A DNA stretch of 64,000 bases from Parasitella parasitica NRRL 2501 (GCA_025201805.1 MU619277.1:65828-129827), one strand, 5' to 3'; numbered from the stretch's first letter, positions 25,822-28,426 are shown. Notes: generated by a model not told the origin, from the letters alone. Numbers and translations: made by a program.

Positions 25822-26122
25822 TATTGTTGTGTGGTGGCATGTGCCATATAGTCTCATTGCCCCATATATTAGTCAGACAGTCAAAACACTCCCCCCCCCC
25901 CACTATCCAAATATTATATAATTTATATTTTATCCAAAAAAATTAACAATGGTCTTTATCCCATTAACCATTAGTTTTGGTAACTTTGCTTATATCTCTG
26001 TTGCGTGTTATAAATATTCGTTATTGAATAATCGCTTAGTTTAAATCCTATATCAGGTAAATATCGGTTCACGCAACAATATAGAATAAAAATAAGAAAA
26101 ATTGTTTCTTAATATTCGATTA

Positions 26123-26400
26123 AGAGCATCTCCAACGGAGATGGTAAACGAAAAGCCATTTAAAGCACCCTTTTTTTTTAACAACCCGAAAATTTTTTGT
26201 CTGCTTTTTTGGCAGTGCTAATTTGAGACGAAAAACGTTTATTGAGTTCATATGACATTATTAAGTTTCTCCACACCTTTTTTCTTAAAAAATCTTGCAT
26301 GTTTTTGCATAATACCTTAATTTCAAGATTTAAGCTTTTTGCTATCAAAAATAACCTTATTCAAACCTAGTATAAATATCCTCAATTACTTTTTTACTTA
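26123..26400 (+). mobile_element. Left end of a PIF/Harbinger-type DNA transposon (orphan TIR; right boundary uncertain)
   Basis: TTA|AGAGCATCTCCAACGG at 26120-26138 matches the typical Harbinger/Tourist terminus with a TTA target site. No matching right TIR was seen in the window. Confidence 0.5.
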
Positions 26401-26710
26401 TAAATCTTTTACTGGTGTAATTGTCTCTGCTTGCTTACTGTTGCTTTGCTTTTTTGTCTCTGAAGCTCTTTGAATTACTCCCTTGGCTCTTGCATCCATT
26501 GTATTCTCTTTTACTATTTTACTCTTCTCTTTTCTTCTTTATGCAAAGTCATTCTACTTACAAAACAGGAGCTGGTGCTCACTACTTTTATTCAACCCAC
26601 ATTTATATATTTCATACTATAAACCTCACAATTCTAATATTAATATGAGCATTCAGGACAGAAATACTGGCCATTTTAAAAAATGTTAATAAAGTTTGTA
26701 TAGATAGTTA

Positions 26711-28268
26711 AACTTTATACACTATACCCTTTTTTTTTTCGAGTATCCACTGTGTTGATCGTAATGCACTTTGAGATTTTGCATTGAGCCTAATTTTTCA
26801 AATTCAACATAATACATCACTGAATGTTGTAAGTTCATCCCTTCTTTTTCTTTCCTGAATTTACTCCTCACACATATATGAAGCGTAAACATAAAGACGA
26901 TCCACCAGATAGGAAAGGAAAGAGAGCTATAAGAAGTAAATATCTAACACATACATTGTGAAAAGAATATATGCCTTACTATGTTTTAGGTGCTGATTTG
27001 AATCACCAAAAAGAGGAGGCTGATTTGACAACACCAGGCATTCCCACCACCAACGATGCTTCAAGTTCAACAGCAAAGGCTTCTAGCTCAACAGAAAAGA
27101 CTGCTAGCTCATTTAATGATATAGGTTCTTCTTCCAGCAAAACTCTTACTTTGTCTAAGAAAGTCCAACAGAAAGAAGACAAAAAAGTAGCTTTAGAGGA
27201 GTTCAAGAAACAAAACAAATCCAACAAACCAATGCTGTGTCCTTCATGTAAACAGACAGATCATGCAAGGTCTACCAGTAAACTCTGTCCACATCGAAAA
27301 GAAAAGAAGGTGGTTCAATACAATGATGACGAAAAGATAGGAGCTTTCACCATCAAGTCTTCACTTAAAACCACATGCACAAATACAACATTCATGAAAT
27401 CAATTGACAACTTGGTGGAGTACGCTACCAAAATTACCTATATAGGCTCATTGTTTGCAAACTTTATCATTCTGAAATGTGCAGGTGCCAATGAAGATAC
27501 GCCAATCATTAGTCAAGATTTTGTCTATGCTATATTTTCTACCTTAGCAGGTAATGGGAGTAGGGCTCCTGAGTTCATCCGTCAATATTTTGAAGAGTTC
27601 AAAAATGCGTGCGAGATTGACGAGCAAATTTTAAAATCATTGAAGTCTATTGGTTATGCGACTATTCTTTCCATTTCTGCCAAGCAGTATGAAACCCTTA
27701 TCCGAAATCATGTTTCTGAAGACAACAACGAGAAACAACAATTCTTACCCTCACCCTCCACCACTTGATGGATCAGTTAAGGCAAATAAAACCATCATTG
27801 CCTATGGAGATGGAAGATTTTCACCTACCATGAGAAGCAAAAGATCTGGACCTACAAAGACTATCATAAAAGCTCTTCAAAAATGTAAAGAAAATCGTGG
27901 TGTTACAGTCCAAATGGTAGACGAATACCTCACCAGTCAAGTCTGCAACAACTGCAAAAAAAGAAATGTTGAAAACGTTGTGCAACGATCAGCAAAGCGA
28001 AGAGTACATTCTGTATTACAGTGTCAAGAAACCGCTTGTAATATTATATGGAATTGCGATATAATGACTGCAAAAAACATCCTCAACATATTTTTACATG
28101 CAGCAAGAAACAATGACGCTCGTCTTTCACCATTCCAGCGTTCTGAATCAAAAGAATAATTGCAAGCATTGCGTGTCATTGATATTACTCTTTGATTCGC
28201 CATGGGTATTCGGTTTTTATTACGAAGATGGACTAGATAATGTCTTCAACGAGAACGGGGATAAAGTT
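26711..28268 (+). mobile_element. Non-autonomous Fanzor1-carrying element with short imperfect TIRs and TA (or TTAA) target duplication
   Basis: Left gtTA|AACTTTATACAC (26709-26722); right GGGGATAAAGTT|TAaa (28257-28272), whose reverse complement is AACTTTATCCCC. Encloses the Fanzor ORF and a 3' structured RNA. Confidence 0.75.
26878..28159 (+). pseudogene. Fanzor1 (TnpB-derived RNA-guided endonuclease), internally deleted and frameshifted
   Basis: Exon 1 MKRKHKDDPPDRKGKRAIR (NLS-like); intron 26936-26989; CCHC knuckle CPSCKQTDHARSTSKLC; YETLIRNHV; frame change near 27720. Then IIAYGDGRF, RuvC-II VDEYLTSQVCNNC, zinc finger RVHSVLQCQETAC and RuvC-III WNCDIMTAKNI. No RuvC-I Asp motif is present. 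Confidence 0.85.
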
Positions 28269-28290
28269 TAAAGGGCAAAATGAAACGCAA
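28145..28290 (+). ncRNA. Predicted Fanzor omegaRNA (scaffold ~28145-28268, guide from ~28269)
   Basis: Long stem 28145-28160 (GAATCAAAAGAATAAT) / 28184-28198 (ATTACTCTTTGATTC) overlapping the stop codon; inner hairpin GCAA-gca-TTGC; hairpin GAAGATG/TGTCTTC (28224-28247) inside an outer stem 28207-28218/28251-28263. Ends at the element right end. Confidence 0.65.
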
Positions 28291-28426
28291 AAACCTGATG
28301 ACTGAGGAGACTTTATCTCAAAGAATTGCTGATGCTTGCAACAATGTCCGCGTAAGCGACCTTCGTGCTTTTTGTAGCCATTCTAAGCGTCATATTAGTT
28401 TCTGTCGAGATAAAATTCATTTTTAA
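28268..28426 (+). mobile_element. C-terminal fragment of a Tc1/mariner-IS630 (DDE_3-type) transposase
   Basis: Translates LKGKMKRKNLMTEETLSQRIADACNNVRVSDLRAFCSHSKRHISFCRDKIHF*, resembling the post-catalytic tail of Mucorales IS630/Tc1 transposases (after the SPELNPIExFW motif, which is absent here). Confidence 0.75.

Follow-up and report, generated by a model that had tools for sequence, protein, structure and literature searches.

Two open reading frames (26971–27768 and 27650–28159) lie close together in the window, by which the whole analysed stretch of 64,000 nucleotides from Parasitella parasitica NRRL 2501 is meant, and each of them holds a separate piece of a Fanzor1 gene. The region of the two frames, used as a query, proved to be repetitive, as over 50 matches to it were obtained across the 32.8-Mb genome. 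The features at the locus are as follows, with strands given relative to the window.

26121–26123, no strand: TAA, left copy of a presumed 3-bp TWA duplication whose right copy was lost with the right end
26124–26147, plus strand: left terminal inverted repeat (TIR), found at both ends of paralogues
26213–26416, plus strand: 204-bp 5' segment, absent from most deletion derivatives
26878–26935, plus strand: putative exon 1 with NLS-like basic stretch, read from the sequence (ATG in 11 of 11 copies)
26936–26989, plus strand: putative 54-nt GT..AG intron that keeps the frame (GT in 11 of 11 copies, AG in 10 of 11)
26990–27768, plus strand: exon 2, N-terminal (REC-side) part of Fanzor1, open to the deletion junction and then out of frame
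27238–27294, plus strand: CCHC-like motif C-X2-C-X4-H-X7-C(PH), read from the sequence
27714–27719, plus strand: junction of a ~1.4-kb deletion
27722–28159, plus strand: C-terminal Fanzor1 remnant with stop codon, identified by Pfam PF07282, relatives and hhalign
28160–28216, plus strand: 57 nt of 3' non-coding sequence after the stop codon, up to the end of family homology
28215–28426 (perhaps to ~28600), plus strand: Tc1/mariner transposase remnant, outside the element

The C-terminal piece, whose stop codon lies at 28157–28159, matches the Pfam family PF07282 (Cas12f1-like_TNB) over 27770–28156; its score of 33.9 bits (E 3.6e-8) exceeds the curated cut-off of 26.3. When its 129 amino acids were searched exhaustively with HMMER (E<=1e-3), they gathered 549 relatives, many of them fragments and some full-length proteins of 550–860 amino acids. 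The best matches were gene models of P. parasitica itself, a mycoparasite of the Mucorales, and among these models P0001 is 95% identical. The profile A1, built from 15 full-length relatives, aligned over about 600 positions with the Fanzor1 structures SpuFz1 (8gkh, E 9e-66), GtFz1 (9cer, 7e-57), and PpFz1 (9cf0, 1e-50); TnpB, Cas12f, and a viral TnpB-like protein aligned to its last ~65 positions only, at 1e-9 or worse. On this profile, the C-terminal piece (27722–28156) falls on positions 510–632 (hhalign 99.9%, E 6e-37) and amino acids 119–244 of the N-terminal open reading frame fall on positions 31–160 (98.2%, E 5e-14). The N-terminal frame was also matched by BLASTP to P0015, an 863-amino-acid relative from Rhizomucor (E 6e-17, amino acids 135–212 to 204–281), and the pieces are collinear on P0015 as well as on A1. 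A preliminary description of the locus had called it a Fanzor1 and proposed a profile search of both frames as a check; the profile and the collinear pieces bear this call out and show likeness to Fanzor1 over the full length, rather than to Fanzor2 or TnpB. All homology searches were run exon by exon. With the C-terminal piece, phmmer against structures detected GtFz1 (9cer, E 2.7e-4) and did not find PpFz1 (9cf0) at E<=1, so that close sequence similarity to PpFz1 is absent over this piece. Single-sequence searches of the PDB with the N-terminal frame and with the RuvC-I exon of the longest family copy (contig C70) returned nothing useful.

Most of the motifs that had been proposed were recovered in place. 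The RuvC-II DE lies at 27920–27925 (DEYLTSQ, Glu codon 27923–27925) and is identical in 23 of 25 copies, the two halves of the finger are CNNC (27944–27955) and CQETAC (28022–28039), and the RuvC-III motif reads WNCD (28049–28060). The C-terminal features by which Fanzor1 proteins are recognised, namely the RuvC-II glutamate, [TS][TS], the C4 zinc ribbon, and the RD of RuvC-III, are thus present, with C in the place of R in the last of them. Position 28055 is a C>T change against the family majority; CGC (WNRD) stands in 16–17 of 20 other copies and TGC in 3 of 20. Comparison of the copies therefore confirmed the suspicion that WNCD is a derived form that arose by a CGC>TGC (CpG>TpG) change. 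Further upstream, the peptide of the putative first exon begins with MKRKHK at the ATG at 26878 and contains RKGKR further on, in agreement with the NLS-like exon described before. The CCHC knuckle stood in part: the C-X2-C-X4-H-X7-C spacing is there, but at 27238–27294 there was no Pfam zinc-knuckle (zf-CCHC) match at E<=1.

The window copy was also said to be eukaryote-adapted, with a spliceosomal intron at 26936–26989. For the family this holds, since the C70 copy contains introns of 53 nt (3198–3146 of locus L031) and 56 nt (2735–2680), each starting with GTAAGT and each restoring the frame, and both are spliced out of the annotated proteins P0151 of R. microsporus and P0005 of P. parasitica. 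Spliceosomal introns are therefore a part of the family gene, and both of these lie within the part that is deleted from the window copy. The interval 26936–26989 is a plausible intron by its GT..AG borders and its frame; the expected splice joint was not the one observed, as an RNA-like read run (X7) skips another interval. Two contigs of this run join 26926 to 26980 and leave out 53 nt (26927–26979), which on the minus strand read GT..AG (GTAAGG...TATAG). The run was guessed to be RNA from its very uneven depth, from its only 22.6 Mb of contigs, and from the skipped interval, which has zero depth in X7 and is covered by DNA runs. Transcripts over the 5' part of the Fanzor gene thus seem to be antisense and spliced, and no sense-strand transcript of the window gene was seen in the read runs.

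Next to this region, the 5' non-coding stretch 26449–26662 reaches a depth of 5.7–7 thousand in X7, as compared with 130–1000 elsewhere on the element (10–20 times deeper). Within it, 56 nt (around 26493–26560) are 79% identical to the matching place in Rhizopus microsporus (L072:5965–6017), where coding DNA is only 58% identical. The hairpin TIR described below is absent from the locus of this relative. Because of the depth, the 79%-identical stretch, and the neighbouring spliced antisense transcription, a functional RNA (regulatory, antisense, or a left-side ωRNA-like one) was considered for 26449–26662, and it is a rather doubtful reading. When the same stretch was folded, neither of its strands showed a marked structure (z -1.9 and -0.8).

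The left end of the element was located at 26124. The TIR is 24 bp long, GAGCATCTCC-AAC-GGAGATGCTAA, and contains a palindrome (9-bp stem, 3-nt loop) that is perfect in the family and has one mismatch in the window copy (26125–26145). As a pattern, it occurs once in the window, on the left only, and not at all in shuffled sequence; in the genome, it was matched 57 times as compared with 0 matches for the control, and many copies carry it at either end. In the window, TTAA is read at the true left flank, and every family end that was examined has T-T/A-A before GAGC. Direct 3-bp repeats of TAA or TTA (TWA) were found in 13 of 18 end pairs, including all five short elements, and the bases outside are variable there. 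The other 5 of the 18 pairs do not fit a 3-bp duplication; the assembly has gaps at some of these loci. All ends are also compatible with TA plus an optional base. On balance, the target-site duplication would mostly be a 3-bp TWA, which is the signature of PIF/Harbinger rather than a TA.

Elements of PIF/Harbinger type are known for 3-bp TWA duplications, short TIRs, and abundant MITE derivatives, and the Parasitella family resembles them in all three. MITE-like elements of about 600 bp that consist of TIRs without the gene and carry TAA duplications were found at C37:28059–28697, C46:34719–35306, C112:67522–68157, and C116:78821–79447. They share with the Fanzor element only the first ~120 and the last ~45 bp, and their interior is different. 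A PIF/Harbinger-like enzyme might therefore be the mobiliser, as the TWA duplications point to it. The family differs from PIF/Harbinger in that no DDE_Tnp_4 gene bounded by hairpin TIRs was found in the genome: DDE_Tnp_4 (PF13359) has seven matches in the gapped assembly, none of them with a hairpin TIR within 1.5 kb or among the genomic TIR positions. More generally, a transposase gene that has these hairpin TIRs as its own was not found in this gapped assembly.

Mobilisation by a mariner enzyme is the next explanation to be weighed. In this case, the Fanzor1 family would be of Tc1/mariner type and would duplicate TA, like ROr-1, ROr-2, and MCi-1 of Bao and Jurka. Such families exist in Mucorales: ROr-1, ROr-2, ROr-3, and MCi-1 carry Fanzor1 and have TA duplications, and mariner ends have been described as well (PMC3627910). 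In Parasitella, TA lies within one base of GAGC at every end, and at locus L059 a DDE_3 gene stands between two hairpin TIRs. This gene was tried as the autonomous partner and rejected, because it is part of a nested mariner that has ~100-bp TIRs and a TA duplication of its own. Mariner loci L050–L054, moreover, are without hairpin TIR, and the matching 3-bp TAA/TTA repeats with variable outer bases in 13 of 18 pairs and in all five short elements speak for three duplicated bases. Neither a plain TA duplication nor TIRs shared with a DDE_3/mariner element were thus found, and a mariner-type family is unlikely.

The nested mariner itself, which occupies L059:4340–6040 (G000:C89) and lies inside a hairpin-TIR element, codes for HTH_23 and DDE_3, and its TIRs contain many GTGTGCCA repeats. 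Other genes stand beside solo hairpin TIRs. These are a DIRS-like retroelement with reverse transcriptase, RNase H, and tyrosine recombinase (L056:3209–6141), NDC10_II/Crypton-like open reading frames (L058:1–2041), and a Pif1-like helicase fragment (L055:3467–4282). They were considered as partners of the family, and none of them is one.

Inside the window copy, a frame break with loss of the middle of the gene had been proposed near 27720, and this could be substantiated. Across 27714–27722, the N-terminal and C-terminal frames are off by one base, at a point where about 1.4 kb of additional sequence is present in other copies, and beyond the junction exon 2 continues as an out-of-frame reading to a stop at 27766–27768. 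The search for a full-length copy, which had been suggested for defining the deleted segment, led to contig C70 (L031, 5655 down to 1991), the longest copy with ~3.67 kb. It carries 1433 bp at the junction, and this segment encodes the RuvC-I motif VWAVDSGIS, which was aligned with VWSVDPGV of P0015 (E 7e-17). In C70, the segment is flanked on both sides by the 6-bp microhomology TGTGAA, at which the deletion therefore arose. RuvC-I was removed by it together with WED and the remainder of REC, and the frame was shifted by one base. A 3956-nt version in run X8 of a related organism has ~1449 extra letters at the same junction point, and contigs of X7 and X2, two strains of the same organism, continue into the middle segment after 27715. 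The catalytic triad of the window copy is thus incomplete, the RuvC-I aspartate having been removed at 27714–27719. Since RuvC-I is missing and RuvC-III carries the derived R>C change, and since no transposase is encoded, the earlier view of a non-autonomous, nuclease-dead Fanzor1 derivative can be upheld.

The same internal deletion is found in at least two other copies (L002 in C147 and L003 in C24), and therefore the deleted form itself was mobilised in trans before the window copy lost its end. Other copies have other deletions, in which for example 26721 or 27318 is joined to the middle, and such varied junctions are the usual picture for a cut-and-paste family. The copies also vary in their 5' part. 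At most loci, 26212 is joined straight to 26417, and the 204 bp in between are present in the window copy, in C70 (82% identity to window 26119–26384), and in an X8 contig that spans 26275–26392. Among the copies examined, none has an intact full-length gene, as C70 is frameshifted and several copies are interrupted by N runs; activity of the family would be expected by analogy with its relatives. The N runs comprise 700–2975 bases inside copies L008, L011, L017, L025, L028, and L034–L036, and intact copies may be hidden there. Six-frame open frames of 550–1124 amino acids at some TNB matches were also looked at, and those examined turned out to be artefacts of assembly N runs. Further TNB matches with long open frames lie at C8:396623, C21:251784, C64:49842, and C4:367452 and may represent other Fanzor1 families of the genome, perhaps including PpFz1.

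From the family majority, the window copy differs at 25 of 1800 sites (1.4%), 4 of the 25 being CpG transitions, and its insertion is young. The low divergence also bears on the idea that the deleted form was kept for a function of its open N-terminal fragment (~280 amino acids with NLS-like stretch, zinc knuckle, and start of REC), for example as a regulator. It is true that exon 2 is open for 258 codons and that the deleted form has multiplied to three copies or more, but an open frame of such length is expected without selection at 1.4% divergence, many deletion forms with different junctions coexist, and sense-strand transcripts were lacking in the read runs, so that a retained function is very improbable.

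The right end of the element is missing. Intact copies have ~175 nt of conserved sequence from the stop codon to the right TIR, in which paralogues and the X8 contig continue past 28216 as ATCCTATACACC..., and all paralogue matches to the window end at 28216. Accordingly, ~118 nt including the right TIR are gone. The DNA that follows contains an internally deleted remnant of an unrelated mariner transposase gene, consisting of an 18-amino-acid N-terminal piece (28215–28268) and a 48-amino-acid C-terminal piece (28280–28426). On the same genes in L052–L054, both pieces are found 1.2 kb apart (tblastn E 1e-5 and 1e-19), and related full genes are present in L050–L054. The N-terminal motif also occurs in the mariner transposase of ROr-1 (PMC3627910). 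The 28216 junction is identical in contigs of two other strain runs. The DNA after 28216 is a rearrangement partner and not the natural right flank, and it would not be a natural guide.

This loss concerns the presumed RNA component as well. In SpuFz1, the segment that begins at the stop codon and includes the right TIR encodes the ωRNA scaffold, and the flanking DNA after it supplies the guide (PMC10432273). By analogy with this placement, most of the presumed ωRNA region would be gone from the window copy. Compared with shuffles, the C70 3' region has an only moderately better fold (z -2.9), mostly owing to the TIR hairpin, and the copies are too alike for covariation. No match to an Rfam family was obtained apart from one sub-threshold chance match.

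With both ends known, there is next to no chance for the 1.56-kb element at 26711–28268 with 8-bp AACTTTAT inverted repeats and TA/TTAA duplications that the preliminary description had drawn, since its two 8-mers do stand in inverted orientation but occur at chance frequency (8 times in the window as compared with 6.2 expected, equalled in 28 of 100 shuffles), the homology of more than 25 paralogues extends leftwards beyond 26711 as far as 26124 and breaks off at 28216, short of 28261, the latter position lies inside the mariner transposase remnant, and the true TIR, which begins at 26124, also bounds many copies on either side. The AACTTTAT termini are not shared by other copies, and the supposed right repeat is the end of the mariner N-terminal piece. 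Because the homology crosses 26711 and ends at 28216, the quoted TA/TTAA flanks are not target-site duplications, and the TAM predicted from the left flank was drawn from a false left end. For an intact copy, the TAM would be predicted to contain TWA. Of the description as a whole, the Fanzor1 call and the internal deletion stand, and the termini, the target-site duplication, and the logic for the TAM fall. As a separate observation, the supposed left repeat is contained in a local palindrome, ATAAAGTT..AACTTTAT, at 26689–26718, and one X7 contig is without 26668–26730, which spans this palindrome.

Among known systems, Spu-1 of Spizellomyces punctatus, which encodes SpuFz1 (Saito et al. 2023, PMC10432273), is similar in that a single Fanzor1 lies between TIRs of ~25–30 bp without a transposase, and it also has many partial copies and TIR-only 'ghost' elements of ~550–600 bp. 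It differs in its target site, which is a TA duplication with CA upstream there and mostly a 3-bp TWA in the Parasitella family. The latter furthermore has perfect-hairpin TIRs, introns, and a longer N-terminus, and its ωRNA and activity are presumed. PpFz1 (Xu et al. 2024, PMC11423790; PDB 9cf0) is a Fanzor1 of the same species. It is active with the TAM ATN, in contrast to the dead window copy, and by sequence comparison the family described here is distinct from it. The families of Bao and Jurka 2013 (PMC3627910) have in common with the present one that an intron-bearing Fanzor1 is placed in TIR-bounded non-autonomous elements of Mucorales. One of them, PBl-1, has a 12-bp TIR, 4 exons, and a 3-bp TAN duplication and so resembles the Parasitella family also in a 3-bp duplication that contains TA, and MCi-5 is associated with a Harbinger transposase. 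The TIR core of the Parasitella family was not found in the supplementary sequences of PMC3627910; this comparison was made by TIR core and descriptions. With TnpB of IS200/IS605, the core of RuvC-II, zinc ribbon, and RuvC-III is shared (weak matches to TnpB structures), as are hairpins near both ends. IS200/IS605 elements carry a Y1 TnpA, their subterminal hairpins share one orientation, and they make no duplication; in Parasitella, the hairpins are true inverted repeats, inverted including their loops, the ends carry duplications, no Y1 transposase is known to be linked, and the gene is a eukaryotic one with introns.

Taken together, the sequence at 26124–28216 is read, with a probability of roughly 0.9, as one dead member of a young DNA transposon family of P. 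parasitica that is non-autonomous, is present in multiple copies, and has a Fanzor1 as its sole gene. The following history is proposed. The full element, as represented by C70, would be ~3.67 kb long and be framed by 24-bp TIRs, each a perfect 9-bp hairpin, with mostly 3-bp TWA flanks; it would contain the multi-exon Fanzor1 gene, followed by the ~175 nt of conserved non-coding sequence up to the right TIR. An ωRNA from the 3' region and a guide from the DNA beyond the right TIR are assumed as in SpuFz1. A deletion of ~1.4 kb between two TGTGAA repeats would then have produced a form that was mobilised in trans to give at least two other copies (C147 and C24), a CpG>TpG change would have turned WNRD into WNCD, and the window copy would finally have lost its last ~118 bp at the junction with the remnant of another transposon.

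As judged from these data, the window copy bears three lesions, which are the internal loss of ~1.4 kb, the WNRD to WNCD change, and the loss of the last ~118 bp. With these lesions, a nuclease product from it is impossible, as is mobilisation, and most of the presumed ωRNA region is gone. The locus is a decayed copy of a multi-copy Fanzor1 family, with both boundaries redrawn, and therefore an ordinary dead transposon copy. By itself, it holds no functional interest, and the annotation implied for it is that of a Fanzor1 pseudogene in a non-autonomous transposon which is truncated and has the remnant of a mariner beside it. The family adds to a known class, in which Fanzor1 is found inside TIR-bounded non-autonomous elements of Mucorales (PMC3627910, PMC10432273, PMC11423790). 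In Parasitella, from which PpFz1 has been characterised, it represents one further type of Fanzor1 transposon, with hairpin TIRs, TWA duplications, and ghost MITEs.
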